A DNA stretch of 53,543 nt. It comes from Selaginella moellendorffii (taxonomy: Eukaryota; Plantae; Lycopodiophyta). Both the position numbers and the translations under genes were made by a program. The stretch lies in assembly GCF_000143415.4 (NCBI RefSeq), contig NW_003314310.1:134461-188003 (forward strand), read 5' to 3'. Below are positions 20,024 to 53,543 of this stretch, piece after piece; within the stretch, counting starts at the first letter, position 1; each line of letters starts with the position of its first letter. The notes beneath the pieces are model-generated. The model was not told where the DNA came from. It searched no databases and saw only the letters and a list, made by a program, of their open reading frames with translations.

Positions 20024-20058
<35 letters not shown>

Positions 20059-20151
20059 ATGCCCACAGCTGCAATTGGGGTGTAGGAGGAGTAGGAGTAA
20101 GAGGAGTTAGAGCTGGAGTGGGAGTAGGAGTATATGGCTATGGTTGCAACA
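19863..20151 (-). repeat. 3' LTR of B, includes a (CT)n tract
   Basis: Direct repeat of 33322-33612. Confidence 0.8.
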
Positions 20152-21120: not shown

Positions 21121-21323
21121 GAAAAGAGCTGAAATGTCCCTGGATTTGCTATAAGTGTAATGGTTCAAGCTGTATCTTTTGTCTCCAACATCCAAAAAAT
21201 GTGATTTTTGTTGCGTTGTATTGCTGAATGTCTTCCAGATAGAGTGATGCTAGAAGATTCCAAGTACCATATATGAATGGTGTAGAAATGATGAGAAACC
21301 AAGAGTGGGTAGTTGTGATGATG

Positions 21324-23198: not shown

Positions 23199-24356
23199 TG
23201 TAGCGCACGTGGTTTTGACCCTTTATCCTATGGTGATTTACCATAGGATAACACCACGAAGCGGAACCTAAACCCTTTTTGTGCCACGTGACAGATGCCA
23301 CGTGTCACATACCACGTGTCCAAAGGACAGTGGTGTGGAACCCGAGGTTCAAGGCATTGGGCCACTGAATGAAGGAACGGTGCCAAACTCCCAAGTATGG
23401 AGCCAAGGAGTGATGGAACCGGACCACAGAGCAACTCCCGAGCATACAACCCAAAGAGCGAAAGGACAGGAGGCCAGAGCGACTTGGAATAGTCCTGGAG
23501 CAATCAACATCCTAATGCTAGGACCAGCATGCAAAATGGAGCCAAATGGAGTCTGGCGCTGTTTCAGCATACCAGTGGCCTAACGTGAGGACATGGGTAC
23601 TCCCCAGCTAGCATGGAATGGAACTTGGGCTTAGACCCAAGCCGGATGCAGAACAAGGATAGGCATGCAAGTGGGAGCTAAACTATGCCTCAGGTTGGTC
23701 ACCCATGCCCGACCTACCTACTATCCCTACTATACATTTGGAATCCCCCACAGCCCCCCCCCCCCCCCCCCTCCCCCTTGAGGAACACACGCTTTGGACT
23801 TTCACCCCAAGCCTCCCTTAGTATCAGGAGTTAGTCTCTAGGACAAGCTCGAAACTTACTAAATATGGAATGACGCTAGATTGCAAATTTGGACACAGGA
23901 TGAACACCATTGTGTTCAGGCTAATCTTTATATTCTGTAGATATGCCAAATAAGCAAATCTAGACACTTTCCATAAATAGCATTTGGGACCGAAATGAGA
24001 CTAACACAAAGGGCATGATAGCGAAGGTGTTTGGCAGACACAGTAAACTATCATTTAGCGATATTGAGGGACCAATCTCAATACGCAAGGGTTCTTGTCA
24101 AGCCAGTGCAAGACAAAGCAAAAGAGAACTAAAAAGCTAGGCCAAGTATGCTTGGCTAAATAGAGATTTAGGAATTCTATCCTTATGCTCATCCGGCCAA
24201 GTACAGATGCAAAGTCCAGTTTGCTAACACTTGAACAAGAGGGACTAATAAAGGGTCTAGCAATACCAACCTTCTGCCATCGTGGCAGTAAAGAAAGAGT
24301 GTCCATAAGGATTAGCTGACAGGTAACTTTCAATACTCGAAGTCACATTCGCGACA
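23199..24356 (-). repeat. 3' LTR of C
   Basis: Direct repeat of 29357-30502, with the PPT adjacent. Confidence 0.95.
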
Positions 24357-27300: not shown

Positions 27301-29356
27301 GCATAAGAGTCACCCTTCTTAGAAAAGTGCAATGGCCACTTTTCTACACCAACTCTAGACTCTATCCAACTTAATTGCATTAGCCCCAAAAGTTAATATC
27401 CCTTTCGGGTTGTATTATACAAATTACCTACTAAAGTTTAAGCCAACCAAAGTCAACTCCAACCTTTTCACTAGTTTGTATTGACTTACAAAAACAGAAT
27501 GGTTTTTGAGCAAGATGATCAACAGATCAGCCATTGGAAAAATCTAAGAAAATTTGTGGAAAAAATTTTCCATCCTAGAGAAAGAATGACTCTCAGTCCA
27601 GGAATACAAACTTTCAAGACTCAACCAACTTCTTTCTACTAACAATTTCACATAAGTTTACCTCAACACCAATTCTCATAATCCAACAGTATGCTTAAGC
27701 ATCGAACATCTTTTTGCCCATACTTTCGACATTCAACACCGACATCCATAAAATGCAAAATGAACATCCAAGGCTTGATCACGAAGACCACATCTTCGGA
27801 TATCCACATTGCACTAACACTCTTCTTCATTCACCTTCAAGATCCAATGTGAAGCCAAAACACTAACAAGAAAAATGACATGGAAAATCAAGCTCTAAGG
27901 AAAATTCCTCATCACTTGAACAACAATGCCACTTTCACTAACACAAGTGCTAGCAAAGTCAATGCTTCAACTACACAATTTCTCCATCCAATAATTTACT
28001 CCAAGTGTTAACAGATCAACTGACAAGCCATAGCAAGTGAATGCTAAAACCCTTTTCCAACACCTCATGGGCAAACTCTTATGGAAACAAGGTACCAACT
28101 TAAGCTTAGCATATCATAGATCATTATTGAGAATCCAGTTAAAGCTACTACAACGCTACTATGTGCAAGTACACTAGCTTCACCATCAACCACTTTGGGG
28201 TTGATCATTATTTAACCAAGCAACTTCGTAAACACATTTCTCATTATCATATGGATATGATATAAAATCATAATGACTTGATCATCAATTGAGTAACACT
28301 ACGAGCAATGCCAATGTCATTACTTTAAAGTGTTTATGTGAGCATCAATTCGACAAAATGCAACATAAATGCCACACTCCACCAATAGAGACTTACAACA
28401 CTGAACACTACTAACTTTTGTTCACAACACAGATAAGCCCATGCTGCTCTCTTTCTGACCAAACTCAAAACTAATCTAACACAAAACTACTCAAGGAGCA
28501 ATAGCAAAGTTCCCCGGAAAAGAATTGAGCATTGCAACCCAAGTCTTCCAATAGCAAGTCTAGACAAAATAGTTTAGCGCTTCACTACTATCCATCCCAC
28601 AACTCACCATTTGTAAGACCATCATCTCCAAGATGTGTCAAGGTAGAGATTCTTGATTGCACAATGTGAATACAAACAATGAGTTAACACCTTGTTGCAA
28701 ACCATCTCTCTAAGAAGAGAAAATGATTTACATGTTTGATCCTTCGTCCCTGACGACTCTCTTTTCAGTCTCATCTTTGACTAAACCTTAAGCTTGCATT
28801 CGCACTACCTTCAGTCTAATCTAAGAAAAGTTTATGAGAGAGCACGGTAATAACTACTCGAACCAATAAACTAATCCCTACAGTCTTGATTGATCCACTT
28901 GTATTCATACCTAGGAAGGATCCACTAGTGCCATGCTAAACAGCTATGGACCAGCCTATTTGCCACTCATAGCAAACCCAGGGTAGATTTACTTTCACCC
29001 ATGATACATGGAACAACTCATGGAACCACTAGAATAACTCATGGAACCATCGATAGGCTAACATTAATCCTGCCAACTCAAAGTGTAACCTCGAGTTGCT
29101 AATGTGCCTCACTCATGAGCCCAAGTGTAAACTCGTGTAAACGGAACAACTCAATCCCTTTTATGAGCCCAAGAGCAAGCTCACATTATCATGGTACAAA
29201 AAGGTAACAAAAACCATACCCAAGGTACCAATGCGAAGTCTTTGCACCCAAACGTGTACCCACTCAGATCATCGTTTTCATCTCTACGTATGCAACGAGA
29301 CTAGTTGCCCAATCTCATTGGATAGTACTCGCTGAGACGTAACCTTTGATACCAAA

Positions 29357-30502
29357 TGTAGCGCACGTGGTTTTGACCCTTTATCCTATGGTGATTTACC
29401 ATAGGATAACACCACGAATCGGAACCTAAACCCTTTTTGTGCCACGTGACAGATGCCATGTGTCACATGCCACGTGTCCAAAGGACAGTGGTGTGGAACC
29501 TGAGGTTTAGGGCCTTGGGCCACTGAACGAAGGAACGGTGCCAAACTCCTAAGCATGGAGTCAAGGAGTGATGGAACTGGACCACAAAGCAACTCTCAAG
29601 CATACAGCCCAAAGAGCGAAGGGACAGGAGCCCGGAGCGACTTGGAATAGTCCTGGAGCAATCAGCATCCTAATGCCAGGACCAGCATGCAAAATGGAGC
29701 CAAATGGAGTCTGGCGCTATTTCAGCATATCAGTGGCCTAACATGAGGACATGGGTACTCCATCAGCTAGCATGGAATGGAACTTGGGCTTAGACCCAAG
29801 CCAGATGCAGAACAAGGACAAGCACACAAGTAGGAGCTAGACTATGCCTCAGGTTGGTCGGCCATGCCCAACCTACCCACTATCCCTACTATACATTTGG
29901 AACCCCCCACAGTCCTCCTCCCCCTTGAGGAACACATGCTTTGGGCTTTCACCCCAAGCCTCCCTTAGTATCAGGAGTTAGTCTCTGGGACAAGCTTGAA
30001 ACTTACTAAATATGGAATGGTGCTAGATTGCAAATTTAGACACAGGATGAACACCATTGTGTTTAGACCAATCTCTACATTCTGTAGATATGCCAAATAA
30101 GCAAATCTAGACACTTTCCATAAATAGCATTTAGGACCGAAATAAGACTAACACAAAGGGCATGATAGCGAGGTGTTTGGCAGACATGGTAAGCTATCAT
30201 CTAGTGATATTGAGGGACCAATCTCAATACGCGAGGGTTCTTGTCAAGCCAGTGCAAGACAGAGCAAAAGAGAACTAAAAAGCCGGGCCAAGTATGCTTG
30301 GGTAAATAGACATTTAGGAATTCCGTCCTTATGCTCATCCGGCCAAGTACAGATGCAAAGTCTAGTTTACTAACACTTGAACAAGAGGGACTAATAAAGG
30401 GTTCAGCAATACAGACCTCCTGCCATCGTGGCAGTAAGGAAAGAGTGTCTGTAAGGATTAGCCGACAGGTAACTTTTGATACCCGAAGTCACATTCGCGA
30501 CA
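29357..30502 (-). repeat. 5' LTR of C
   Basis: PBS adjacent. Confidence 0.95.
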
Positions 30503-33321: not shown

Positions 33322-33612
33322 TGTTGAGGTGTGGCACCTTAATCCTCCTCCTCTCTGTGGCTTTGCTCATGTCCTAAACTCTCTCTCTCTCCATGCTCTA
33401 GCTCAGGACATAAAGTGTAGAACTCTTGATATTTTGCCCTCGTGGGGCTTTTATACAACCATTTAAAATGTTCCAAGAATTGGAATATTTTCTCTCTCTC
33501 TCTCAAGATGACAATTGCAACCAGGGTGTAAGAGTCAGCTAGGGAGTAGGAGTCAAAAGATTCGGAGTAAGAGTAGGAGTAGGAGTGGGAGTATATGGCT
33601 ACAGTTGCTACA
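33322..33612 (-). repeat. 5' LTR of B
   Basis: Immediately followed on the minus strand by the TGG-starting PBS. Confidence 0.8.
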
Positions 33613-34105: not shown

Positions 34106-34791
34106 GAGCAAACTGGACCAGCCAGATGTCAATCAACATGTGGTGTCATTCCCTTAGCCAACCAACAGAGTCAGACTCGAGACCGCTCTGATACCAAATG
34201 TAAGCTCCTGAGTTTAGACTTCCCGGGAGGTCACTCAGCCCAGTACTATTCAAACCCAAGGACGTTTAACCCCGAATATCCCAAGACCCTTAACCGATTG
34301 GAAAAGGGGGTGCACTCTTATTCATGGGCCCTTTCCCTCTATATTTGAACCCCATGGACCGTCTCTCGAGTCGTTCCCTTTGGTTGCTTACAATCCACCA
34401 CGCTTCCCTGCAAGTTCACACCCTAGTGAACGGAAGCTAAGAGCCGCAGCTCTCCCGAGAGCCCCGCTCTCTTGACACCCTACCACTCGGGTCGAGCCCA
34501 GTGGGAGCAAATTGGACCAGCCAGATGTCAATCAACATGTGGTGTCATTCCCCTAGCCAACCAACAGAGTCGAACTCGAGACCGCTCCGATACCAAATGT
34601 AAGCTCCTGAGTTTAGACTTCCTGGGAGGTCACTCAGCCCAGTATTATTCAAACCCAAGGACACTTAACCCCGAATATCCCAAGACCCTTAACTGATTGG
34701 AAAAGGGGGTGCACTCTTATTCATGGGCCCTTTCCCTCTATATTTGAACCCCATGGACCGTCTCTCGAGTCGTTCTCTTTGGTTGCTTACA
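34106..34791 (-). mobile_element. Cassandra TRIM, inverted part: LTR 34598-34791, internal, LTR 34199-34392, half internal
   Basis: 194-bp TG...CA LTRs containing the 5S rRNA-like core gttaaacgtccttgggtttgaatagtactgggctgagtgacctcccgggaagtc. PBS tggtatcagagc (34185-34196), second copy at about 34584-34595. 399-bp period. Confidence 0.92.
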
Positions 34792-36216
34792 GTATAACAT
34801 ATCTCGGATTGAAAAGGTGATGGGAGTGTCAACTAGTTGCTGAAGAATTGGCTCTGGAACATGAATAGCTGCTGGTGAGATCACAGGAGGAGAAGAGAAT
34901 AGTGACTTGAAGGAGAGCTTACAAGCCACCCTCTATGTCACTAGATTTGGTGCCGATAGAGATTCACTCTCAACCGATTCTGAGGGATCCACGACAGGCT
35001 GAGCAGCTGCCTTCTTCTTCACTTGGGCTTGAGTGGTTGCAATTTGCTACTACTATTTATAGAGTTTCTCGGCTACCAAAATCATGTTGACCAATGAGAC
35101 TGGTGCCTTGCCTTTGCTTGACAAAGGGGCTGCCTCAATTGCTTGTTGCTCCAATTGCTCCTAGTATATTTCTGGACCACGAGATGGTGTGGAGTTGTCA
35201 GCAAAGGGACATTGCTAGACATGTTGAGAAGGTGGAAGCTGAAGCTCTAGGTGAAGGTTGAAGTAGTGTTGTATGTTGTGTGTGTTCATCTCGCAGTGAG
35301 TGCAGCAACGGGACTTGAATTGGCATTCCCAAGCTGGAGCAACCTCCTTCCTGGACTCTACAAGCTTCTAGAGCAGCTATCATGGTGTGACTGTTGTTGA
35401 AAAATTATCTCCTTCAATTGCCGTAGCTCATTGAAGAACTTCTCGATAGCCAAAGTTGTATGCTCAACAACAATGGGCTTTGGTGTTGATGGGCAGACAA
35501 CTACACAAGACAACTCTAATGAGGTGATGGCTTGGTTGAAATTGACTCTGGCAATCCCCAAGTTGACAAGCAGCTCTCTTTCCAACTTTGTGGGAAACAA
35601 AAATGCCTCGCAACAAGACCCAAATGTCTTCTTAAGAAGTTTCCGCTGCAAGTTCCCTCATAGACCTATTGTGAATGCTATTATCCCATACTGCTCATCT
35701 TGGACCACCCTAAGATCCCAACATTGCTTCTAGTATGCTCAAAAATAGGTGATGTAGTCAGGAACAAACTCATGAGCACCCTATCGAAACAAAAAGAGGT
35801 TGATAAGTAATTAATTTGTGGGTTTTTCTTCAATAAAACGTTCTCTAAAAGAAGCAAGTAGTGTCTGGAAGTCCATTTGGTCCTTTGGGAGAAGAGAATC
35901 TACCCAAGTTGCAACTTTGCCTTCAAGAGACTACAAGAAGTTGCGGCATATACAATCATCGTCGAAAATCATGTTTGTGGTGTAGTAGTAATCAAAGCGA
36001 CTAATATGTGATGCTAGAAAGATTTTTCTAACACCTGAAGGGTCAGCAGACCATTCCCTTCTATAAAACATAGAGCTAGGGTTGAGCTAAAGGTGGCTGT
36101 GCCATAGTTTGTAGATCTAAGTCATTGAAATTTACTAAGGATGAAGAAGACTCAACACAAGAAGGTGTCATGTTGTACTTAAGTTGCCTCTAGATGTTAG
36201 AAAGTTTACTCCATAC
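34792..36216 (-). pseudogene. gag: Inverted gag region of A3
   Basis: 35760-36216 is colinear with A1 gag 70-530 but opposite to the orientation of the rest of A3. Confidence 0.85.
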
Positions 36217-36524
36217 CTCCCACTGGGCTCGACCCGAGGGGTAGGGTGTCAAGAGAGCGGGGCTCTCGGGAGAGCTGCGGCTCTTAGCTTCCGTTCACGA
36301 GGGCATGAACTTGCAGGGAAACGTGGTGAATTGTAAGCAACCAAAGGGAACGACTCAAGAGACGGTCCATGGGGTTCAAATATAAAAGGAAAGGGCCCAT
36401 GAATAAGAGTTCACCCCCTTTTCCAATCGGTTAAGGGTCTTGGGATATTCGGGGTTAAGCATCTTTGGGTTTGAATAATACTAGGCTGGGTGCCTCCCAG
36501 GAAGTCCAAACTCAGGAGCTTACA
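36217..36524 (+). mobile_element. Cassandra TRIM, remaining part: second half of internal domain plus LTR 36332-36524
   Basis: Reverse complement of 34199-34505. 5S-like core ggttaagcatctttgggtttgaataatactaggctgggtgcctcccaggaagtcc at about 36453-36507. Confidence 0.92.
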
Positions 36525-36639
36525 TATGCCTTGTCCCTGGATTCAGCTAGTGTTTGGAGGAGTTTGCATGGTTTGGAACACCACAAAGCACCCTCTATAG
36601 GACTCCTCAAGATGTGCACATTGTTAACATGACAAGATA

Positions 36640-36990
36640 TGGTGGAAATCCTAGTCCATTCTTCATCCCGGTGCAGATTAGTACTTCTTCTTACAAGATG
36701 GATGCTTTGGTTGACTCCGGTTCTGCAAGCAATATTATCTCTCTTGAAGTTGCCTTCTCAGCATAGCTACAAATCAGTAATAGCTCCTCCATTGTGCTCA
36801 AAACCTTTGCCAATCACATTGTTCCTCCAACGGGCATTTGCTGTGGTGTCAAGGTCTTGGTGCAGAGTGTTATTTCTGAGGTAGATTTCCTCATGATTGA
36901 CTACTAGTGTCTTTGAATGTGCTATTTGAAGGACTTTATCATCCTCAGCCACTCATGCCAAGTTGCAGCCCATTGCACTATTGACAGTGC
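36640..36990 (+). pseudogene. pol: Aspartic protease of A3
   Basis: FIPVQISTSSYKMDALVDSGSASNIIS. Confidence 0.75.
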
Positions 36991-37914
36991 AAAAGACAGG
37001 ATGGAAATTAGCAATGAAATCCATAGTGCCACCTTTCTCAACAACCATGGCAGAGCTCTTTCTTAGCACACCCAGAAGGTTCAGGCTAAGATGGTCTCCA
37101 CACCACACTTTCCTCCTAAGCTCATAGAGATTTTCCCTGAGTTGGCAGTGGAGTCACCCATATATGCGATAGATGCTTTCTCATGCAATGTGATCGACAT
37201 TGTTGGAGGTGAGTCCAACATCTCTAAACATCTCTCCTCTCTTTATTTGAGAGTAAGGATGAGCCTCTAGCCATGCCCTTTTTATTTGATGGTGGGGCTT
37301 ATAGAGTGCTGGCTTCCACATCCAACTTTTTGGAGTGTTTCCCAATTGAGGAAGGGCTTCTTGATTCATTTCTTGCAGGACCAACTCTCTCTCATGGAGT
37401 TTGATGATACAGCCACTCTAGACTAGGTCCATATTTCACAGAATATAGATGAATTCAGTTTTCTTCAACCACTATTTAAGGTGTCACACAGCTGGCATCT
37501 TCCCACTAAAATCATTGTAGCTGGTGACTCTAAGCATATTTTGTCATGCCATTTTTTGGAGACAAAGGGTATTCATTCAGACAAACAGCTGACAGAAATA
37601 ATTAAGCCAATTGGACATGCTGCATGCAAGCTATATCTCAGTGACTTCAGAATTTCCTACTGTGGAGCCCCTAGTACAGATCCAAGTGTATTGCATTGAA
37701 GATTCAACCCCAGACTTGGACTCAACTTCAATGGAGGATCTTCCCTCACTAGTAGAACACTTGGCTTTAGTCCTTGCATTGGAGATTGTGTGCTTAGAGC
37801 ATCAGAAGCAAGAGAGAGCAAGAGACAAAGGCCTTGGATCCAACAACAATGTTCTTGCCCCACTTTCCAGAGATAGACTTGGTGGATGTGGAGTCTCTAG
37901 CATCTTTATTCAAG

Positions 37915-38330
37915 GAAGAGGACACTCCTATAGTTACAGCTTATTTTGATAGCACTTTCTACCCCAAAATCCAAGTTGCAAGCATTAGAATTTGGATGAT
38001 TGATTTTGTTGAGAACAAAGTAGCCGACCTCTCTATCACTTTATCAGCAATATCAACTAATGAAGTGGAGTACTTGGTAGAGCTATCAGTGCCATGAATT
38101 TTGCCACAGATCTCAAGTTTAAGCAAGCCACTTTCATTAGAGATGTGCAACTCATCATACGCCAATTTACTGGAGAATACCAGATCCACAAAGACAACCT
38201 AAAAGAGCTATGGCAACTTGCGGTCAACCTAAAGGATGAGTTATCTCAGGTGACTTTTCAAAGTTTCCCTTATGAAGAAATTTTTTGGGTAGATAGGTTA
38301 TCACATCAAGCAATCATCACAATACAAGAG
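37915..38330 (+). pseudogene. Additional (archaeal-type, aRH) RNase H domain upstream of RT in A3
   Basis: AYFDS...ISTNEVEYL...AMNFATDLKFKQATFIRDVQLIIRQFTGEYQI...FQSFPYEEIFWVDRLSHQA follows the RNase HI pattern FDG..TNNEAEY..GDSQLV..Q..G.Y..PRE.N..AD.LA. One frameshift. Confidence 0.75.
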
Positions 38331-38479
38331 GCAAAAGACACTCCCAGCTCTTTGATTTCCAAGGTCGAAGAGGAATCTGAGATAGATGAGCCCTCTGAGC
38401 CTAACGTTCCTCTAGACTCCAGGGTTCATGCCATTTTCCTAAGTGATGACAAGGACCTGGTCTTTATCGCCACATTGCT

Positions 38480-40740
38480 TGCTTCAACAAACACAACAAA
38501 GCTTTTGAATCTCCTTCACTGTTTCAAGGATGTGTTTGCTTGGGACTAAAGCCAGATTCTAGGAGTCCCCATAGACACAATCATGCACAACATTATGCTT
38601 TTGGAGTCAGTAAAACCAATTTGTCAAAAGAAGTAGCATTTCAACCCAATAGCTCACTTGGAGATGAAGTTGGAGATTGAGCGACTTTTGGCAGCCTGCT
38701 TTATTTACCCTTTGGAGAACTCAGAGTGGGTGGCCAACCTTGTCCCTACACAAGGAAAATGGAAAACTCCACCTTTGCATTGACTTTCAAGACTTGAACA
38801 AGGCAACTGCAAAAGATCACCTTCCAACTCTATTTATCGATGTGATTGTGGATGAGATGGCCGGATACCAATACTACTTTTTCATGGATGGTTTTTCAGG
38901 CTACAACCAAATCTTCATTCATCTCGATCATCAGGATCTCCTTCTAGACACCTGGGGGCATCTTTGCTTTCAATATCCTACTGTTTGGCTTGTGTAATGC
39001 CAAAGCTCCTTTTTAGCGCTTTATGACCCACACCTTTCACAACTTGATTGGAGATTCCTTTTGGGTGTATATAAATGATTTGTGCATGACCTTTGACTCT
39101 TTTGATGGCCACCCTTTGCACTTGGAGTAGATCTTCACTCATTGCCAAAAACACAAGTTTTCTTTGAACCTAGCAAAGTGTAAGTTTGGGATGATTGAAG
39201 GCTGGTTGCTAGGCTTTGATGTCTCATAGGATGGGATCAAGCCCTAGATGGCCAAATCTCGGGAGATTTTGGATCAGCGCTTGCCAACCAACTTGAAGCA
39301 GCTTTATGGCTTCCTCGGGCAAATAGGTTTCTTTCACCATTTCCTCCACAACTATACTGTAAGTTCATGGTCTCTGATAACTCTGCTATAACACAATGGT
39401 GAGAGCCAACAACAAACCTTTGATTCACTGAAGCAGTCCCTACACACGGCCCCGGTACTCCAGCCACCAGAATAACAACTTCCTTTTGAGATTTACATCA
39501 TAATTGGAACAGAGGCTTTTGGAGCCAACATTTAGAGCCTGGCAAGCCACCTCATGCAACTTGCTATGCCTCACATTCTTTCAAAGAGACTAAGAAGAAG
39601 TATGTGGATGCAGAAAAAGAAGCAGTAGCTATTGTTTACACCTTCTTTTATAGTGATTGGTTCATAGTCCTTGTACTTTATCTTGGATTGTGACCATCGA
39701 AAAGTTCCAGCCAACTTTTTACATGCGGCAGAAGCGTATGATGGATCTAAGTGAGTTCTTAGTTGCTGAAGCTACCTCCTTTGTGGTCCCAGTAGTGTTA
39801 TAGGACATTGCAATGTACCTAGATTCAGGCAAGTTCCTAGCTGATTCCTCATCAGTGCAACAAAAGGCATTAGAGATCCGAGCATGGGGGTTTTGCCTTC
39901 TCAACAGATAACTTTACAGGAGGACTTCTCAAAATGTTTTGTTATGGTGTGTGGGTGAACATAAGGTCCCTGAGCTCCTTTGTGCTTTCCACTCTTGTGT
40001 GGGGCATTTCTCGGGACGGGTCACAGCGCACCTCCTCTTGCGCCATGGCTACTTTGGCCTCGGATTCACTAGGATAGTCTGGACTATGCAAAGGCATGTG
40101 AGCAGTGCCAATGGTTCAACCCTCGGAGCTATGTTCCACGTCTTCCTTTCCAGCTTGTCAGTTCTCCGGGTCCCTTTTTCCAGCGGGGACTTGACCTCAT
40201 TGGTTTGATCAACCCATCGAGCTCAAAAGGACAGCAATACATCATCATGCCAATGAATTATTTCACGAAATGGGTTGAGGCCATCCCTCTACAACAAGCA
40301 GATCAACAATCTACAACAAAGTTTGTCTACAAGTACATCATTTGCCAATTCAAAGTTCCTACAATTTTGATTTCTGATCGTGGTAGTGGCTTCCTTGGAT
40401 AGGTGATGCAGCATCTTCTCCAGTAGCTGCAAGTCAAGCACTTGAAGAACAGCTACTATCCTGAGTGCAATGGCTAGGCAGAGTCCAGCAACAAGATATT
40501 GAAGACAATCATCTTAAAACTTGTGGAGGATCACACAAGGCGTTAGTATATACACTTGGTTACAGCGTTGTGGGCCTTTCGGATGTCAATTAAGACATCC
40601 ATCTTTGCTACCCCATTCTCTCTTGTCTATGGGACAGAGGCTGTGCTTCCAGTGGAGATCTAGATGCCATCACTCTCACTTTCACTTCGATACGCAGTAG
40701 CAATGGAACTTAGTGATGAGGACAAGCTTCATGTGTATGA
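38480..40740 (+). pseudogene. pol: RT, RNase H and integrase of A3, heavily decayed
   Basis: FKDVFAWD, LCIDFQDLNKATAKDHLP, FMDGFSGYNQI, GHFSGRVTA, NYFTKWVEAIPL, ISDRGSGF. Confidence 0.85.
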
Positions 40741-41144
40741 CTTGGGCAATGCATCCCCTCTTCTACCTATCCTTCTTTCTCGATTTTGGCCAATCCTTGG
40801 AGCATACCTAAAGTCATCATGAGGTTGCATTTGCATATTATACTTTCCTAAGCCAAAATCCAGGTACGGGTTAAGTTCTTTGGGTTTTTCTTCTCTTTCC
40901 ATACTTTTCTTCACTTTTTCTTTTACATCAAAGTTTAGTTTGACTATAGGGTTTCCTACCGAGTTTTCCTCCCTGTTTTTCAACTTCACATCTACCCCCT
41001 TTTCTTTTTTTTTCCCACTTTATTTTTCAAGGTTTGTACTATTTCACGCAGTTACTAGCACTTGGCATCAGCAGCAGAGGTACACTCTACACTTTTTATA
41101 GGGTTCTTGTGCCTCTGGAGTCAGTGCGATCCACCGTGGTCGCA

Positions 41145-41332
41145 TGTTAAGGTGTGGCCACTTAGAGAGTGTGAGAGTGAGAGAGAGAATATTCTAATTC
41201 CTGAAATATTCCCTATCCTCCTTGTATAAAACCCTTGCCCCACAGGGGCAAAAGGGGGCATTTGTGAAGAGCATTGGAGCATTTTTTGTATTTGAGCAAG
41301 CGTTGGGGGAAGTGCCCATCCTTCCCCCAATA
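41145..41332 (+). repeat. 3' LTR of A3 (188 bp)
   Basis: tgttaaggtgtggcc...cccccaata, homologous over its full length to the A1 LTR. D-family sequence resumes at 41333. Confidence 0.85.
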
Positions 41333-41529
41333 CCAACTAAGGTGAAAATTCATTTGGTATTTTATGTTAGCTAGTTGAAAGGTGCACTATCTTGGAGTGA
41401 AAGGCCTAATGCCTCCTTGATATATACAGCTGTGGAAGATGGACTAGGAGCTTGAGTAGGTTTCCTTAGAAAGGGCGATCACCGATACAACTCATTCTTG
41501 AGATAAGGACTTTGTTGGGGGGGAAGAAT

Positions 41530-41762
41530 TGTTATGTGCCATCTTTGACCACATGGTCAACATCGGTCAAAGGGAATCTCTCAAAGCTATATTAAGGCAT
41601 GTTAGGGTAAGGAACTTAACTTTACCTAGGGCTCATAATGGAGCAATGGCATAGTGGAGCTTTTGAGGTAGCTCGGGGGTGGTTGGGTGGTGAGGAATCA
41701 AAAGGAGGCGTAGCATAGTCTAGGGAGAATAGGTATTTGTCTTTTAGTGTTGGATCTTAACA
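41530..41762 (+). repeat. 3' LTR of family D (D2)
   Basis: Preceded by PPT gggggggaagaat. Homologous to the D1 LTRs. Confidence 0.9.
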
Positions 41763-42888
41763 AGTGTAAAGATTTTAAGACAATATGGGACTTTTAAGAT
41801 TGTAGAATAATATAGTTTTATATTTCTATTAGATCTGATTCAAACTTCCAAAACCTAAAGATAATTAAATGGGGAAATTTCTTCTGCATTACTGAAATCA
41901 TTTGCCACTTTTGTAAATGTTTTCTTTGCTGACATTTCATTCTTTGTCTTGGCTCTATATAATTGGAAGCTATGATTTGCAACAATACCAGCATAGTTGA
42001 ATGCTCAAAGTTTCTTCTTTTAGGAATATATAAAGTGGATAATATTAGGATTTACAACATTCCAAGTCCAAAAAGACTTGAGATTTTGAATAAGTGCTTG
42101 TAGTAGACCTTATCTTTCTCCCCTTAAGTCAATCAAAGAAAGAGAAATTTTTTTATAAGAAAGTCTTTAATAATTATATTATCCCTATTTATCCCTTAAT
42201 GTTCTAAGGATTCATAGTGACAGTATACCCAAATCTCATCCCATGATTACATTGCTACATTAGCTGCCAACTTTGACTTCATTAATATTCAAAGCTGTTT
42301 GCAATGTTTTTCAATTTTCTGACCTCTTTGTTGATATGCACTTGTTTTCGCATAGGCCTATAAGCGAGCTCCTATCCACATACAATGGCAACATCTTTTT
42401 TGAGCTACTACCTTTTGTTAATTCAAAGTGAAAAAGGATGGAGACTAAGCAAAAGTTCCATAATTGGTGCAAGATCAAGATCATACACTTTTAGCATTTC
42501 AAAGGTATAATGTTTATAGTTCATTATGGTGGGTATTTAGATTATGGATGAAACATGCAATCGAGATGATGGTATAAATTCTACCTTTTTTGAAGTACCT
42601 ACAATCAATCCTCCCACCCATGACATAATTGGTGTTAGATTCAATTGTCGATTTTGCAAGAATACTTCATTATATTGTGTTGTCAGTGCATGGAATATGG
42701 AAAGGGAATATAGAAAATGTGCATATCAATTAGCCCAAAAACCTTAGCTTATATACAGAAGTGAGTGGTCCGAATTGAAACCAATCCGATGGCTACCAAA
42801 ATCCCATTACGCTAATATTAGTATACGGCATCGTAGCCGTACACTTGGCCCTCACATCATCCCGTCCTCTCGGAATAATGGAAGACCA

Positions 42889-45800
42889 TCAGGGTTCTTT
42901 TGTAGATGGGCCGGGATTTGGAGGAACATCAGAAGGAGGCATCGGTGGATCTGTAGGTGGTATTAACTCCTCCTGATCCCTTTGTATGAAGCGTTTCAGC
43001 CGTTGCACATGCACGATCTCTGGAGGATCGGTCTGCTGAACGTCATGCTGAACCTCATAAACTTGTGGTCCAACTTGCCGCAACACCTAATACGGTCCTT
43101 TCCACTGCGCAAGAAGTCCCTTAGATAAACCACGTACCGTTCCCTCTATATTTGAACCCCATGGATCATCTCTCGAGTTGTTCCTTTTGGTTGCTTACAC
43201 CCTCTTCTCACCATGCCCTAGTATGGGGTTAGGACTTGAACCCAACCTTGCTATACTAGAGGGGTTGGACTCGAACCCAACCTTCGTAGAATATGATGGG
43301 GAAAACAGACTAACACCAAATCATCCACTTTGTACTCCGTAGGTGGACAATGATGAGAGTTGTAGCGCCGTTGTTGTCCTACTTGTACACAGCCTAAGTG
43401 TTCAGCAGGCTCTGCTTGGACAAGTGGAAGAATGCTCGTCAAATACTAATCCCACGACCTAGCATCGGCAGCTCGCGGCAATCGCGAAGGTAAACCCAGC
43501 TCCGTTGGTAATATTGGATCATGACCATATAAGAGTTTATATGGTGAAGCATCAACAAAACTTTGCACCTCTGTGACATATGCATACCGAAGAGACAGCA
43601 AATAACCATCCCAATTCGAATGCTGAAAGTTCACATACTTCGCAATCATCCCTTTGAATGTCCGAACAAGCCGCTCCACCAGACCATCTGATTGTGGATG
43701 ATAAGCACTCGTGAAAGTGTGGCGTATCCCCAACCGAGACGTCAAAACATAAAATACCTCAGCCATAAATGCGGGACCATTATCCGAAAGAATCCACTCT
43801 GGACAAGAATGCTGGAACACCACTCGATTGAGGAGGAAGTAGCCAACAGCAGTTGCAGAGGCGCTAGCAAGAGCACCAACTTCCACCCAACGAGTCAAGT
43901 AGTCAGAAGAAATAATAACATACTCATTGCCAGCAGTTGACCGTGGAAAAGGTTCTATAAGATCAAACGCCACCAACTCAAACAGACGGGAAACCGCAAT
44001 TGACTCCAACCGTCCTTCCGCAGCACAAGGGGGAGTATTACGAGCTTGGCACCAAACGCAGCTACACACATACCGGATAACATCACGTTACATCTCCGGC
44101 TAGTATAAAGACCTACGCAGCTTCTTGGTTACACGACAGTGTCCCATATGCCCACCTAGAACAGGAGAATCATGGTAGGCATGGAGAAACTGTGGAATAA
44201 AGACAGAAGGCACCACCAGCCGTAAATGATCCTCAGGATCCGTCCCCACAAAATAAAGAAGGCCATCTTCAAGGCGATATTGAGAATGTAAATGCCGGAA
44301 AGGCAAGTCATCAGCAAGTGATGCAGGATTCTCAAACCCATCTCGAAGCCTTTGAATCCACGGCTCAATCTTTTGAGCCTCGCGAACATCATCAAGAGAA
44401 GGTAGATCTTGCTTTGCGCCTTGTGGACACTGAACGTCAAGGACAGCAACCGCCAACGGCATAGAATCCTCATCTAGAAAATCCACAGATGCTGGAACAA
44501 CAGGCTCGTCAGAAATATGAGAAGTGAGTGAAGAAGGAAGAGGAGCTCGAGAAAGGGCATCAGCATCAGCCATAGAACTCCCTGGGCGATGAACAACATC
44601 AAAATCATATATCTTAAGCTTTAAAGCCCACCGAGCAATACGACTAACCAGGTTCTTCCACTTCAATAATGAAATAACGGCAGCATGGTCACCTTCAAGT
44701 AACGTCTGAGAACCATGTAGATATGCATGAAGTTTCTTGAAACCCCAAACTGCCACTAAACACTCCTTCTTTGTTGTGGAGTAGTTCACCTCTGCTGGTT
44801 GTAACGTACAGCTTATATATGCAATGGGATGGCGCTGACCAGGCACACTCGGGCTCTCTTGCATTAACACACCTCCAAGACCAATATCATAAGCATCAAT
44901 GCGCAAAATAAAAGGTCGAGTGTAGTCAGGATATGCCAAAACCGGAGGAGTCGTCAACAGCTCTTTGAGATCCACAAACGCCCGCTCACAATCTGAAGAC
45001 TAGATGAAAGATGACGTTGATGACTTCAGCAACATTCGCAATGGTGCAGTGCGATCAGAAAGATGATCCACAAAACGACCGAGATACTGCACCTTGCCCA
45101 GGAAGCGCTGCACATCATTCACACACTTCGGAGTAGGGAACTTTAGAACGGCTACGAGTTTGTCAGGATCAACTTGCAAACCCTCACGAGAAATACGGTA
45201 CCCAAGATAAGTTGTGTCCTTGGACCCAAACACGCACTTCGACCGCTTCAGCTTTAAACCAACATCCCGTAGCCAATCCAACACTTTACACACATCACAA
45301 ACGTGCTCTGCCCACGTCCCCTCCGAGTGAATCAAGACATCATCAATGAAGTCAGCAGTCACCTTTAGCATATCACAAAGAACCTCATCCATCATCTGTT
45401 GAAAAGTTGCTGGAGCATTGTTCAAACCAAACGGCATCACCAAGAACTCATACAAACCAAACAGTGTACGAAAAGCAATCTTAGGAATATCTTCGTCGGC
45501 CATCGGTACTTGCCAGTACCCAGAAGCAAGATCTAGCTTGGTGAACCAACGACTTCGCCCCAGGCGATCCAAAAGATTAGCAGTGTGAGGAAGAGGGTAC
45601 ACATCCGGGATCATCACTTCATTTAACGGACGATAGTCGATGTAGAAACAAATACTCCCATCAGGCTTCGTCACAAGATGAGGTTCACATGCCCAAGGAC
45701 TCCGCAACTTCCGAATAACACCCTTCTCCAACATCTCCTTGACGTTTGCACGTAAAATCTTGATCTCCTTGGGTGACTGACGATGAATAGGAGCCTTGAT

Positions 45801-46500
45801 TGGACGAGCATCCCCAGTTGGAATGGGATGACGTGTGGCAATCTTGGCCCCAGACGATAGGTCAAATTCAAAGAGATCAGAATACTCCTTCATGAGCTGG
45901 TCAATAGCTGCAACACAAAGATCATCAGAGGGATCGGAAAAGGGAAGAGCAGAACAAGATGGAAACACAAGAGGAAATAGTGGGGGAACAAAAGTAATGG
46001 AAGTAGAGGTAAAAGTAGAGGGACGAAGAGGTACGGAAGTGAGAGGAATGGATGAAACATAAGGAAGTATGAGACAAGGGGGAGAAGCCTCAAAGTCACA
46101 CTTGGCATGATTGTGCTGCAACCAATCCATACCAAGAATGAGGTCAAAAGCTTGACTCGGCACCACTCGCAATGACTGCAACTCAAGCTCGAGATCGCCC
46201 ACATGCACAACCAGGTCCGCCTCATCTCGTGCACATGCATGTGTACGGCCGTTGCCATAAAGAATGAAAACTGGATCTGCCGCACGACGCAAGTGTAGAC
46301 GACAACGTGTGGCAACAGGTCAAGCAATAGAAGATAAACTTGAACCTGTATCAACCAACACGGAGAGAATAATAGGAGACCTCTTGTTATAAAAACGAGC
46401 TTGGAAAGTAAACACTGGATGAACTGGTGCCGAGTGAACCCCTTGATGATACTCCCGAAAGAAAGATGGAGGGGTCACTAACTTATTCGTGCAAGGTCCC
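42889..46500 (-). pseudogene. pol: pol of G (PR-RT-RH-INT, with stops and frameshifts)
   Basis: VLVDTGSS, KLDLASGYWQV, MPFGLNNAPATFQ, FIDDVLIHS, ADADALSR, HDSPVLGGHMG, DYLTRWVE, SDNGPAF, AYHPQSDGLVER, WKGPY, VHVQRLKRF. Confidence 0.92.
43140..43284 (-). other. Insertion in the G integrase: 60 bp of Cassandra LTR 5' end plus about 85 bp of foreign flank with a duplicated ggactYgaacccaacctt motif
   Basis: 43140-43199 matches 34733-34791. Confidence 0.8.
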
Positions 46501-46599
46501 TCCATTACTCGTGCGACTCCTCGTTTCCCGGATGCACCTCGGTGTCCAAACCTTCCACCGCAGCAGCACCAATGGGACGTTGCTGACACCAAGGTCTCC

Positions 46600-47340
46600 A
46601 CCCAGGAAATGGAGGTCGCCAATCCGGAAAGTGCCGACAACGCCGATAAGTATGACCAACTTCATCACACGCCCAGCAACGAACATCACGGCCACAACCA
46701 CGTCCTCGCCCTTGTCCTTGGACTCAAGTAGCAGCAGCATCAACCTCCATTGGAACAGGACCATCACTCATAGGAAGTGGAGCGGAAGGACGTGCAGCGA
46801 GAAATGGAAGAGGCGACGTTTCATAACGTTGTGCCAAGCGAAGAGCATCGTCAAGGGTGGCAGGAGCAAGTGCATGCACAAGGCCGACAAGATCTTGACG
46901 AAGTGCTGGCCATAACATTCCTAGCTTGATCCGCTCCGACATATTGGGCTCCGCACGAAGCAAAAGACTTCGGAAACGAATGCTAAATTGCATCACTGAC
47001 TCAGATGGCCCTTGGCGAAGACGATGCAATTGTTGGAAGGCATCGTCACAATCGTCGGCATATCCGAAGGCGCGTTTGAAGACGTCTGAAAGAAGACTCC
47101 AATCCCCACGAGTGGCCGCACTCAAACCATTGTACCACTGCAATACCGTCCCTTGGAGACACATGGGAAACTCATGCAAACGTCAAGCATCATCCCAAGA
47201 ATGATATGTGGCAATCACTGTGAAGTGATCGAACCAATGGTACACATCATCCCCAGGATTCCCACGAAAGAACTCCGGCCGAACGCGAGGATTGGCACCA
47301 AGAGCAGGAGGAGTTGGACCACATGCCGTGAATGCCACCA
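46600..47340 (-). pseudogene. gag: gag of G with CCHC knuckle
   Basis: LQGTVLQWY...LRQGPSESVMQFSIRF...PVPMEVD, then CWACDEVGHTYRRC after a stop. Confidence 0.85.
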
Positions 47341-48424
47341 TCAATTGAGTTTAGTTGTTCAATTGTAAGCGCATAGCATCAAGCAATTGGACCAACTGCT
47401 GCTCTAGAGTCAAAGGAGGAGATTGCTGATCTGCCATGAAGATGGACGAAGAAAGAGCAAAAGAAGAGAAAAGACAAAAAATGAGAAGGAAATGGGAGAT
47501 CTAGACAATACAAAAAGCTAGATCTAAACCAAAATCCTAAAAGGGAAGAAAAAGAAAGGAAATGGAAAAAAGCTAGATCTAGACGATGCAAAAGCTAGAT
47601 CTAACCAAAATCCCAAATTCAAGCACTCATCAGGGACAATCAAAGGTGCCCCTCATCTCCACCAATGTGAGTGCATAGAATATGGAAAGGGAATATAGAA
47701 AATGTGCATATCAATTAGCCCAAAAACCCTAGCTTATATACAGGAGCGAGTGGTCCGGATTGAAACCAATCCAATGGCTACCAAAATCCCACTACGCTAA
47801 TATTAGTATACGGCATTATAGCCATACACTTGGCCCTCACAGTGTTATTTCTGAAGCCAAGATATATTACTTTCTTCTTTAGGATGGAGAGACTATTAAA
47901 ACCATAGCATATGTTAGCACACATGCATATCCAATACAGGAAAGAATGCAAAGGAGTTCACTGAATTTTTTCAAAGGTTATGTGTAGATAGAGATCATTT
48001 GAAACTCATCTACATCTCTAAAGCATATTCAGAAGACTGTGCTCAAGGATTTCATCACAAATACCCTACTTAATCTGGGTTGTTAGAAGACTCAACTGGA
48101 TGATGCTAATTTATGGGACTTGCTACAATCCATACAACCTGCTACTAGCTTTAGAAGGTAAGCAAATAATATTTTGTACTTTATAATCATATCTTTCCTA
48201 TATATTAATCTGATTTGTATGACTTTTTTCAGTGAGGGTTGTTTCTATACAAGTTATCCATAGAAGTTTGTTTCTAAACTAAGTTATTAGTCAATAAGCA
48301 AGCCCTTTTGTCTTGAAGATGTCTATAATGGGCTCTACCTCTAGTGTAGATTTTATCTCTCAAATAAATATATCTAGATCAAATGACCTTCCTAATAGAT
48401 AGACATATTTTTGTCAACTGGATT

Positions 48425-50400
48425 TTACTTATTTATTCTCTATAAAACCGTAGAGTCTAGTTTCAACATACTTGAAACTAGAAAAGAGCAAATGGGGTGG
48501 TGAGAGGGCCAGAGCCGAATTGAAGCTCAAGTTTGTATCACTTATGGTCCATGTGGTTGAAATCCCTAATGGGGAATTTGAGGGACTTGAGGAGGTATAC
48601 GTTCCATTGCTCCTGGACAAGTGGTGTTAGAGCCATAGTGGTGGTTTCCATGTTCATTCGTCTTTGCCAGCCTGGCTTCTGTGTCTAAAGAATGGCTAGA
48701 GAGCTTGTTCTTGAGCAATCTTTCCTTTGTTCCCTCTCTTTGTCAGTGTGGATGCCAATGCAACAATTAGGTATGACCAAACCTTTGAGATTGTTGCCTA
48801 AGCTGAGGGGTTCTTGTTGTTGAACACCTTGGTGTAGTGAGCTTTCCAGATCTCTGCTAGAGTACATCCCCTGAGGATATAAAAAAGCTCTTGATAGAGA
48901 TGTGTGAGGTGAGTTCACATCCGGTTGAGTTGGTCAAAGTGGGGGTGTTCATTGTGCCTCCATTTCCAGACGTTTGAACATTTTGTGTTCCCTTGCAGAA
49001 AGCTGCCCTATAGTGCTGATTCATAGATTACCGTTGTTCCTCCTTGAGATGTTTGCTTAAGGATTGCCATGGCTCCTTCCTAGACTTCTTGTGTTGTTGA
49101 GCACTCCCGTAATATTGGTCATTGTGTCTCCTTTTCTCCACATATGGTGCACGCCATGTTTGGGAAGTGTATTGCCACGAGTGAGGTCATTCCTACTAGG
49201 CCAGCCACATAAAGTAGTGGGTTTTGGCAGACCAGCAGCCTTTCCAGATCTTGTTCACACACTGTGAGTAGTTCTAGGGGAGGATCTATTGTGCTCTTGC
49301 TTTTTTGATAAAAGTGGACTGAGTTGGGGGGTGAATCATTCTTCAGCCGAACTTGGTTTTATACTGAAAGAATCCTTTGCATGTGTCCTTCCATTCCACA
49401 CTCTACTCGATCCAACTTTAGTTCTTCTAGAGTCTGGTTGCGAAACCAATAAAGTTGGGCATACTATCATTTCAAAATTGTTGGGTTTGTGCATGCTGTC
49501 TTCTTCTCCATTTGGATCATGTGGACAGGCTTGGCATTGGTCATATCTCGGAGTTTCTCATATTCTGGGTGATTATGGGCCCACATATCCCACCTCAAAG
49601 ATCAGGTTAGAGGCTCTACCAAGGGGGGTGCACAAATGAGTGTCATTTAACTTCCACCATCAATGGTCTAAAGTGTCGGGTATCTATAGTGTCTCAAGGC
49701 ACACTTGCTGGGCTTTGTGGAAGGTAGTTTGGAATTTTCACATGCTATGCTCTGAGACGTCTAGGCCATAAAAGGCTTTGATCCGGTCACAGTTGTTAGC
49801 CGTCTGCTGTTCTTGGATCATAGTATCAATCTTTGCAAATATGCACATACTCATTTTGCATAGGTCCCCGCAGGTTTGGTCTAGGCCTCGATCTTCCATT
49901 TCACTGAGCATTTTCCTTTGACCTGGAACCACTTGTTGATGAAGATTGGTTGTCGGTCCAGCTGTTCTTTGGACTGTAGTTGTTCTCACTATAGCTTACA
50001 TTTGAACTGGTTCCAGATCTTGAAGAGCTTCCTCATGAAAGTGCTGGCACCAAGCATTTTGAGTTTGGCATTTGAGAACAACCATTGTTCATCTAGTGCC
50101 TTGTCCTGTTGTGTGTGCTCTTGGCGATGTGGGAAAATCTTGAGGAACTGGTGGCATAAAAGTAGCCTCTACAGCTGGTTTCCTGGCATAAGCATCCACA
50201 TAAAGAGCTTGAAGAGGAGGGCCTTGCATTGTTCCTGGATGTTGATGATGTTCAGTTCTTCTTCATGCTTAGGCAGTATGACTGACCACCAGTCCACTTT
50301 AGCACCGCCCCGTGAGAAATAGGAGGAGCCTTTCCAGACATATGTCCTGATCAATTGGTTCATCTCATAGATCATCCTTTGATCTAGGGCATAGGCACAT
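48425..50400 (-). mobile_element. 5'-truncated decayed L1-like LINE (ORF2 C-terminal region and 3' UTR)
   Basis: IRTYVWKG...AKVDWWSVILPKHEEELNII...KALLFK is the post-RT motif. EIWKAHYTKVFN resembles the WxxRN..VF motif. A-rich 3' end at about 48425. Confidence 0.7.
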
Positions 50401-50415
50401 TTTGTCTAATGGGGC

Positions 50416-51000
50416 TTTTCATATTTATCCTCTTAAAAACTATAGGTCCAGTTTCGACATGCTCGAAACTGGAAAAGAGCATATGGGGTGGTGACAAAGG
50501 GGGGATCCCTGGAACTAGAGTTCGGTTATGTGCAGATTAGACCAAAGAACTAGAATCTGGTTCTGTGCCGCCCAGATCTATGCCACTCACTCCACAAACG
50601 TGTGCTCCCTATCCATACTAGTGGTGAACTTTGCACCTTATCCATGGTCCCCAGCCTTATCTCTCCCATGTGATTGCATCTACCGATGTGAAGGACTTGA
50701 GTTGATTGTGAGATCAGTAGAGGTACACCACCCTTGCTTGATCTCCATCTATATCCATCTCCTACAATTTCCTAGAGATATAAAAAGCCCTTGGAGATGT
50801 ACTGTCTTGGATCCCACAATGCAGTGAACTGAGGAGGAGTGTGCAATCTCTAGTAATGGTGATGCTACTACTGCCTGGAAGTCCTCTCCTCGCTGCTGAG
50901 TGACTGATCCCCTTCAATTGGAATTGCTGTTTCCAGCCTCACATCAGGTCGTGCAAGTGTAGTGCCGCCACGCCAGTCCCATGCCCTCATACCAGTATAG
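50416..51000 (-). mobile_element. Second, related LINE 3' fragment
   Basis: 50422-50495 is homologous to 48431-48505 (the 3' end with hairpin). Upstream extent uncertain. Confidence 0.55.
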
Positions 51001-51002
51001 CA

Positions 51003-53543
51003 GTTTGCCTAGTATTCAACTCCTTCTGTGTGAAAAGATACACAAGTGGTTTGTGATTTGTCAACATCACAAACACTGTACCATAAAGATAGTGCCACCA
51101 CGTCTGCAAAGCATGAAAAATAGAGAGTAACACTTGCTCATATGTGGAATAGCGTTGCTCTGCGGAATTCAAAGTTCGACTCTCATATGCAATAGGCTGT
51201 CCTTCTTGCATGAGAACTCCTCCCAGTGCATAACCACTCACATCGCATGTCACCTTGTAAAGTTTCGATGGATCAGCAATGCAAAGCATTGGAGTCTCGC
51301 TTAGCAATTGTTTCAGTGCCACAAAACTCTCCTCTTGTGGCTTCTTCCACTTGAATGGCATATTCTTGCGTAACAATTGCCTCAAAAGAATAACCACCTC
51401 TGCAAACTTATGCTGGAAACATTGGTAGTAACTAGCTATACCAAGAAAACTGCGCAACTCGGCCACTATACTCGGTGTAGGCTAATTTTCCACCATAGCC
51501 ACTTTCCTTGGATCCGTCTTAACACCCTTAGATGTCACAATATGGCCCAGATATTCCACCTCTGACTTTGCAAACTCACATTTGTTCTTCTTTGCATAAA
51601 GTTTGCTGTCTCGGAGTAACAAAAGAACCTTGCACAATGCACCTTATGCTCCTCCATATTCTTGCTAAAAACAAGAATATTGTCCAGGAAAATCTCCACA
51701 AACTCATGAAGATGACGCCCAAATACCTCCGTCATCAACTAAGTAAATGTGGCTAGTGCATTCGTAAAATCAAACGGCATAACTATAAACTCAAAATGTT
51801 CAAAGCTTGTGTTGAATGCCATCTTGGAGATACATGCATCATCCATTGCAATCTGATGATATCCACTCCTCAGATCAATCTTGGTAAACAGTCATGCTTC
51901 ACCAAGCTTGTCTAGGATATCATCCACATGTGGCATCGACATCTTATCCTTCACTATCTTCTTGTTCAAAGCGCGGTAGTCAATACACATTCGCATTAAA
52001 CCGTCCTTCTTCTACACAAGCAAGACCGAAGCACCAAATGGAGACTTACTTAGCTGAATAATTCCAAACTCAAATAACTCCTTGACTTATCGTTGAACTT
52101 CTTGCTCCTCCGCATAACTTAACCGAAATGGACGCCGGTAAATTGGCCGCGTCCCCAGCTCCAATGTAATCCCATGCTCCACACCTCGTAATGGAGGCAA
52201 CCTATGAGGAAATTCAGATGGAAAAGCATCAAAAAACTTGTCAAGTACATCCCGTACTATTGCTTCTCCCCCACACATGCCTTGGTCCCCCAAGTCACAA
52301 ACAAACAGCAAGTAACTCGAAAGTGCTTTTCCATTATGACAAGCCGCTTCAAAGATGTAGCAGAGAGCAGAACAACTGGTGGTTGAATGCCCTTGTCAAA
52401 CCACACATCTTTAACACCATCACACTCTAGCTAGACACGCTTAATACTCCACTTTATCTTTGAATCCACCTTCACCAACCATGGCATCCCAAAAATGAAA
52501 TCCACACGATGGATATCCACGAGATAAAAAGTCTCCAAAAGTGTGGTTTTGCTAACTAACACTTCCAGCTCCTTGACACAAGAATCGAAATGCTGAGTAG
52601 AGGTAGTTGCACCTTCCATCGTGTATGGAAGAACTCCACGTGTCACCAGGCCATGCTCCACAACAAACTTTGCCGAAACAAAGTTGTCATCGCTCCCACT
52701 ATCCAGTAAAATCCGCACTAGATCACCACGGAACACGCCCTCTAGCACTAAAGCTGATTCACGAGTATCCTCAAGCTCCATCTTGTTCCATACACAGTTG
52801 AGTTGACAAGCAATGATCAAAAGTCTCTTCCTCCGACCAGAATGGTTGTTTTCGTCATTCTCACACTGCAAAGTTTGCAACTTTTTAGTATCTGACTTAC
52901 CGTGAGTAGAAGATTGGCCATTCTTCTGGTCCTACTGCTTGTTCTTCAACTGTGGACAATCAACCTTGTAGTGTCCAAGTTCTCCACAATGATGACAACT
53001 TTGTCTATAATTCTTCACAAAGAACTTCTGCTTCTTAGACCCCTTTGCATCCGAAGTAGTCACCACTGACTTCAACTTGTGATGCTTGTTCCCATCCTTG
53101 TGTCCACGGCGATCATCACAACGATTCTCGACAAAAGGACTCCGCGAACGCTTGCGAGACTTGTGCTTGTCATTGTCAAGTCGACGAGCTGCATCAAAGA
53201 GCTCCTCCAAACTCTTTGTAGGCTGAGAATGACGCAAGTGGTGCCGCATGCTCTCACTATGTAGGCCATCAATGAAGTAGGACTTGTTCTGATCTGGATC
53301 CTTCGTTGGAACACGACTAATCAAGCGAATAAGCTTCTTAATAAAGTCCCTGAGTGTCATTTTCCCTCGCTGGAAATGTTGAAGTTCTGTACGAGCATTC
53401 TTCATGTCGTAATGAGGGGCAAAATGTAAACGGAAAGCAGCCTCAAACTCATCCATGGTAGACACTGGTGGTTTCTTATCCGCAACACAGGACTCCTCAA
53501 GCCAATTCCACCATCGAAAACCCACATCACACAAAACCATTGG
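51003..53543 (-). mobile_element. Element D3: third family-D copy (gag, PR, RT, RNase H), truncated in RNase H and running off the right edge
   Basis: Colinear with D1 7617-9698. gag ORF 52932-53540 contains CHHCGELGHYKVDC. LLDSGSDDNFVS. More stops than D1. Confidence 0.93.

Follow-up and report, generated by a model that had tools for sequence, protein, structure and literature searches.

A shared non-purine block as a candidate replacement for the polypurine tract in old TatI-like Ty3/gypsy elements of a spikemoss

In LTR retroelements the plus strand is held to be primed almost universally from a purine tract, and this polypurine tract (PPT) serves annotation tools as a hallmark of such elements. 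Ty3 has a canonical PPT; so does HIV-1, which in addition carries, in U3 and conserved among isolates, a motif complementary to the anticodon stem of tRNA-Lys3 that has been proposed to aid first strand transfer. The Ty1 plus-strand primer, TGGGTGGTA, is reportedly a PPT that is interrupted by pyrimidines. As for the minus strand, the short 5′ primer-binding site (PBS) of Ty3 needs a partner at the 3′ side (review PMC5371799; Gabus et al. 1998).

In the Tat elements of the Ty3/gypsy group, a domain order with an extra archaeal-type RNase H (aRH) between the PROT and RT domains defines the TatI and TatII clades (Neumann et al. 2019, PMC6317226). TatI, which is lineage I of Ustyantsev et al. 2015 (PMC4408406), is a club-moss clade with 4 known elements, a tRNA-Trp PBS and 4-bp target-site duplications (TSDs; PMC6317226, supplement 5). 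The PPT of TatI was not analysed in those two papers (PMC6317226, PMC4408406), in which the clade is based on only those 4 elements. Compared with TatI as described there, the locus studied here holds at least three diverged families that are without a purine tract and that have a common non-purine block at the junction of the internal region with the 3′ LTR.

The window, by which we mean the whole 53.5-kb stretch of DNA that was analysed, is a nest of plant LTR retrotransposons (Table 1). Three Tat-like families, A, B and C, are present in it; C is new in this analysis, and its proteins are 40-70% identical to those of A3 and B. The A-type LTR is short, at about 188 nt, with the layout TGTTAAGG...TATAAAA...CCCCCAAYA. 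Family A is inserted into a G-type element, and downstream of the A3 3′ LTR lie the INT C-terminus, the PPT and the LTR of this different, 4.9-kb gypsy element. B sits within the A2 leader, which resumes past B just as it reads in the uninterrupted A1, while C is cleanly split by the insertion of G1. The Tat-like copies in the window are all old, with stops, duplications and nested insertions, and there is no young copy among them.

Table 1. Positions, within the window, of the retroelement features discussed in the text
Feature	Position	Strand	Remarks
A1 5′ LTR	1732-1921	-	fixes the A-type LTR start
A1 PBS-like sequence	1729-1713	-	TACTGAACCCAATGTGA, after A1 5′ LTR
A2 5′ LTR	18994-19104	+	5′ side truncated
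A2 PBS	19107-19123	+	TGGTGAACTTAACGTGA, after A2 5′ LTR
A3 decayed pol	36551-40760	+	order PROT-aRH-RT-RH-INT
A3 PROT	~36.7 kb	+	DSG
A3 aRH	38064-38546	+	
A3 RT	38668-38994	+	
A3 RH	~39.5 kb	+	
A3 INT	39.9-40.7 kb	+	
A3 rve match (INT)	40073-40399	+	
A3 11-mer	41114-41124	+	TCTGGAGTCAG, perfectly complementary to the anticodon arm (nt 27-37) of tRNA-Trp; lies 6 nt upstream of block
A3 block core	41130-41143	+	TCCACCGTGGTCGC, one base before LTR
A3 3′ LTR	41145-41332	+	complete, 188 nt, TGTTAAGG...CCCCCAATA
B, whole	33612 to 19863	-	carries nested element N
B 5′ LTR	33322-33612	-	
B PBS	33321-33305	-	TGGTGAATTTGGCATGA, directly after B 5′ LTR
B tandem duplications	20399-20751 with 20768-21108; 21368-22126 with 22206-23160	-	
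B homologous motif	20152-20196	-	
B block core	20166-20153	-	TCCACTGTGATCAC, one base before LTR
B 3′ LTR	19863-20151	-	289 nt
C, third Tat-like element	1922-5854 plus 10767-12455	+	
C block core	12101-12114	+	TCCATGGTGAACAC, one base before putative LTR start
G1	5855-10766	-	
G copy	16422-18993 with 41341-41762	+	
G copy	~49200-53543	-	
N	23199-30502	-	nested in B
E	42681-47847	-	
PPT of G1 and G2			TTGGGGGGGAAGAAT
PPT of N			AAGGGGGGGAGAG
PPT of E			GAGAGGACGGGATGA

Several further features of the nest were recorded. G is a compact 4.9-kb Ty3/gypsy element, present in the window in 3 copies, with LTRs of 228 nt (TGTTAGG...TAACA) and a PBS, TGGTATCAAAGG, which we take to be of iMet type; G1 retains long open gag-PR-RT-RH-INT pieces and has a gap of Ns at about 10440-10498. 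E, a 5.2-kb element with LTRs of about 180 nt, has gag, PR, RT, RH and INT pieces and a PBS, TGGTGGAGATGAGGGG, that is presumably of tRNA-Ala type, going by the 3′ end of that tRNA; it fits the Selgy clade, so far described from Selaginella alone, in keeping with Selaginella moellendorffii as the probable host. N has LTRs of 1158 nt that are 92% identical and an iMet-type PBS, and its internal region showed no conspicuously long ORF. In C the RT-RH region is found twice (3990-5620 (+)), with about 3992-4430 and about 4807-5369 both matching one and the same part of A3, which reflects either an internal duplication or a nested fragment. In B the INT C-terminus and the 3′ UTR are tandemly duplicated (20399-23160 (-)). 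Upstream of the A3 pol there is a 399-nt tandem repeat, 96% identical, at 34106-34791 (+), with an inverted copy 1.5 kb off at 36217-36525; the gag-like piece beside it (35692-36216) is in the opposite orientation to A3, yet it matches A1 (8-531), which suggests an inversion or a separate fragment.

The elements fit TatI by domain order (in A3) and by PBS (in A and B). The extra RNase H of A3 is placed between PROT and RT, and no space is left for one between RH and INT; its RVT_3 match, in what is a decayed copy, scores 18.3 bits, under the Pfam cut-off of 21.6. Likeness to TatI extends to the tRNA-Trp PBS described below and to the spikemoss host. The 4-bp flanks of B, the only copy with both ends, are CTCC and CTTC; they may be a TSD, with 1 mismatch and in a repetitive target. 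The closest database proteins are 38-53% identical and all are of RH-aRH-INT type: the A3 INT piece, used in an exhaustive HMMER search, gave only matches of at most 53% identity, from angiosperm, gymnosperm and fern elements of this type. No relatives came up when the A1 gag-like ORF was used in a word search, and an LTR pattern had no match in viral contigs. A Logan hit (L122) and a legume hit (L121), considered as copies of the family, were rejected, being unrelated at the DNA level.

The stretch that drew attention to this locus, 41101-41144 (+), makes up the final 44 nt of the A3 internal region; it belongs to the 3′ UTR, lies about 280 nt past the decayed INT region and directly abuts the 3′ LTR. 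The initial annotation quoted this sequence and its counterpart in B, both of which are present (at 41101-41144 (+) and 20196-20152 (-)), and placed an LTR start immediately after each. Both placements are right. The A1 5′ LTR and the A3 3′ LTR turn alike exactly at TGTTAAGG, the flanks upstream of this point being unrelated, and the two B LTRs turn alike exactly at TGT; this comparison of 5′ with 3′ LTRs rules out a mis-set boundary in A and in B.

At the boundaries so fixed there is no PPT, as had been claimed for A3. The last 15 nt before the A3 LTR hold 6 purines and the last 15 nt before the B LTR hold 5, the longest run being 2 in each; the corresponding 15 nt of four other LTR elements in the window (two G copies, N and E) hold 12-14 purines by our count, in runs of 7-13. 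A canonical PPT, taken as some 8-15 purines in a row that run up to the first base of the 3′ LTR, is thus absent from the boundary in two families whose boundaries are proven, and probably in the third, C. We place the LTR start of C at about 12116, where it reads CTTT and is without TG, with an alternative, TGTTGCC, at 12263; there are 6-8 purines in the last 15 nt at either candidate boundary. Because no canonical PPT is present at a verified LTR boundary, plus-strand priming would have to use a non-purine site, and the non-PPT route that was originally suggested is supported in the two families with proven boundaries and probably in a third.

It might be that a normal PPT was present in the active founders of these families, and that the copies in the window have lost it or been rearranged. 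The age of all the Tat-like copies here, with their stops, duplications and nested insertions, is consistent with such decay, as is the putative LTR start of C in CTTT rather than TG; however, equally old copies of G, N and E retain their PPTs. Furthermore, since the LTR pair of B is about 87% identical, corresponding to only about 6% change since insertion, decay cannot have erased a run of 10-15 purines from B. Because A3 and B have different LTRs, and belong to different families, yet can be aligned collinearly as far as the boundary, their common ancestor already had the non-purine junction. We therefore consider decay or aberrant copies an unlikely explanation.

A (GA)n run is found within the Tat-like LTRs, at 41165-41192 (+), 20052-20020 (-) and 1903-1889 (-), and resembles the Ty3 PPT. 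In A it begins 20 nt past the LTR start and in B about 100 nt past it, just ahead of a shared promoter-like AATATTCTAATTCC...TGTATAAAA. As a candidate for the real PPT it was rejected: it is inside both the 5′ and the 3′ LTRs, there is no TG after it and, by eye, C showed no such run.

The non-PPT route had also been tentatively tied to the extra RNase H of this lineage. This link is weakened by an angiosperm-type Tat element with an aRH (JGI contig; L123, L125), which keeps a normal PPT, AAAGAAGGGGCAAC followed by TG, the junction reading AACAAAGAAGGGGCAAC and then TGTCATAACC; because of this element, possession of an aRH does not by itself explain the loss of the PPT.

What the three families do have before the LTR is a common 14-nt block, TCCAYNGTGRWCRC, which ends one base before the LTR start (in C, the putative start). 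The merged pattern of the block occurs exactly 3 times in the 53.5 kb, always in the sense orientation and at the ends of the Tat-like 3′ UTRs, although this count is circular, the pattern having been built from the same three sites. Scored against a pattern from A3 and B alone, C matches at 11 of the 14 positions, where about 0.04 such matches would be expected in its 280-nt UTR (scaled by hand). The initial annotation had called the whole 44-nt motif conserved. No other non-coding stretch is as well conserved between A3 and B as the last 45 nt, with 67% identity as against 43% over the initial 30 nt of the LTR, but this is only slightly above the 44-64% of the neighbouring UTR upstream.

The block is mildly dyad-symmetric, and B bears a perfect palindrome, GTGATCAC, at this place. 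The near-palindrome of A3 is out of register with the palindrome of B, and the predicted hairpins differ. A conserved hairpin was likewise rejected, the folds of A3 and B being different, with z-scores of -0.8 to -2.5 for the two sequences. No known RNA family was found, and the duplex energies for 5′-3′ cyclisation between the motif and the leader were no better than those of shuffles. Rather than a primer site, the block may be one for protein binding or for packaging. In C the block holds TGGTGAAC at 12105-12112 (+), which in the sense orientation equals the first 8 nt of the tRNA-Trp PBS (p about 0.035).

Primer use was assessed against a tRNA-Trp obtained by scanning metagenome contigs for the anticodon arm together with the PBS-derived 3′ end, which gave 120 DNA stretches; ARAGORN called tRNA-Trp(CCA) in 9 of the 9 loci tested. 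The sequence used is identical in 118 of about 125 tRNA-Trp copies and is of plant type, although it may not be that of the host. No tRNA genes were found in the window, and a literature string search for the tRNA-Trp sequence gave no match. As initially proposed, the PBSs of A and B point to tRNA-Trp: against the 3′ end of the plant-type tRNA, A1 matches at 13, A2 at 14 and B at 12 of 18 positions, the mismatches being mostly transitions. In all three copies the PBS is of full length (17-18 nt) and lies 0-2 nt past the LTR end, which sets them apart from Ty3 with its short 5′ PBS.

The 11-mer within the A3 motif, originally matched to the anticodon arm of plant tRNA-Trp, does pair at 11 of 11 positions with nt 27-37 of the ARAGORN-called plant-type tRNA-Trp(CCA), with a nominal p of about 0.0003-0.003 by shuffles, depending on the test. 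The poorer match of the B copy, GTTGGAGCTAG, was also correctly noted: it keeps 7 of the 11 letters, or 9 of 11 pairs if G-U pairs are counted by hand, and the complementarity of B to tRNA-Trp is not significant (p 0.16-0.87). C keeps at most 7 of the 11. The tRNA-Trp complement is therefore perfect in A3 only and is no feature of the family, contrary to what had been supposed. The longest complements in the three families fall on different parts of the tRNA, namely nt 27-37 in A3, 6-12 in B and 68-75 in C. The idea that the motif holds a longer antisense copy of the tRNA was rejected, since the signal is driven by the 11-mer alone and is absent in B. Nor, as its LTRs are about 87% identical, has B changed enough (about 6%) to have lost a perfect 11-mer. 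By hand arithmetic, about 1.7 matches of at least 11 nt to tRNA-Trp are expected in such a window. Elsewhere, in the gag region of a G copy, there is an unrelated 12-nt exact complement of tRNA-Trp nt 32-43, TTCTGATCTGGA, at 53287-53298 (+); this match is due to chance and indicates how often such hits arise as background. To judge from these comparisons, the A3 11-mer is most likely a chance match too, or at most peculiar to the A family.

These results bear on the proposal that the 3′ motif pairs with the anticodon arm of tRNA-Trp and so aids strand transfer or an unusual start of the plus strand. The perfect complement stands 21-31 nt ahead of the LTR in an element that uses tRNA-Trp as its primer, and this argues for such a bridge, as do its nominal p (0.0008-0.003, where about 0.001 is low for pure chance) and the G-U-tolerant pairing that B retains, and there is a precedent in the 5′-3′ bipartite PBS of Ty3 (PMC5371799). 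The locus is like Ty3 in that a stretch complementary to the primer tRNA lies close to the 3′ terminus of the genomic RNA, and like HIV-1 in that this is a short (9-11 nt) complement of the anticodon arm of the primer tRNA. However, the 3′ part of the Ty3 site belongs to U3 and is complementary to the T-psi-C and D arms, whereas here the complement is outside U3, unlike in both Ty3 and HIV-1, concerns the anticodon arm and is found in one copy only, so that there is no conserved 3′ tRNA-complementary segment of the Ty3 kind. Its letters are not conserved in B and C, which show no significant complementarity to nt 27-37 and have their best complements elsewhere on the tRNA; extending the alignment adds little past the 11-mer, and the second 12-mer in the G copy gives the measure of the background. 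Because the 5′ PBS is of full length, no 3′ partner would be needed. We regard a tRNA-Trp bridge as improbable. The initial observation is confirmed as to the missing PPT, the boundaries, the PBSs and the 11/11 match, but not as to the 11-mer as a family feature or the near-palindrome.

Least credible, and in our view very improbable indeed, is the idea that tRNA-Trp primes both strands, with the tRNA or a 3′ fragment of it annealing to the minus-strand DNA and starting the plus strand, for although the block resembles the PBS start (in C, where the first 8 PBS nt, TGGTGAAC, lie inside it, p 0.035) and the tRNA 3′ end (TCACC in B, which terminates in GTGATCACC), this resemblance varies from copy to copy and, in the sense orientation, neither the A3 nor the B junction is significantly similar to the tRNA (p 0.09-0.84). 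We give equally little credence to the more elaborate suggestion that the spikemoss TatI elements swapped their PPT for a partly dyad-symmetric TCCAYNGTGRWCRC that is both PBS-like and tRNA-3′-like, with tRNA-Trp or its 3′ fragment acting at both ends; were tRNA-Trp at both ends true, it would be a route of plus-strand initiation not known for any LTR retroelement.

We lean instead, with some caution, towards the reading that the stretch is the 3′ internal end of an old TatI-type Ty3/gypsy element, in which the shared block, and not a PPT, would be the plus-strand primer site and the 11-mer a matter of chance. The minus strand would be primed from tRNA-Trp at the ordinary, full-length PBS, and the TCCAYNGTGRWCRC block would be the equivalent of a PPT, read by its sequence or shape rather than as a purine run. 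After minus-strand synthesis the RNase H of the element may leave an RNA ending in ...GTCGCA (A) or ...ATCACC (B), and this left-over RNA would then prime the plus strand, setting the first base of the LTR. That the block resists RNase H and is used as a primer is what we infer from sequence comparison. Ty1 offers a likeness, in that a short, G/T-containing and not purely purine sequence stands right before an LTR start in TGTT...; the Ty1 primer has 7 purines in 9, whereas in the spikemoss block, which differs in sequence and whose primer role is putative, 4-7 of 10 are purines. With two proven junctions and one that is putative, all in dead copies, we offer the case as a lead and not as a result.

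If the block does serve as the plus-strand primer site, an early-branching Tat lineage would set its LTR start by a non-purine block, which would imply that primer selection by RNase H can be retargeted. This would explain the failure of such elements in PPT-based annotation, and the spikemoss elements would provide a natural system for asking what lets an RNA primer resist RNase H.
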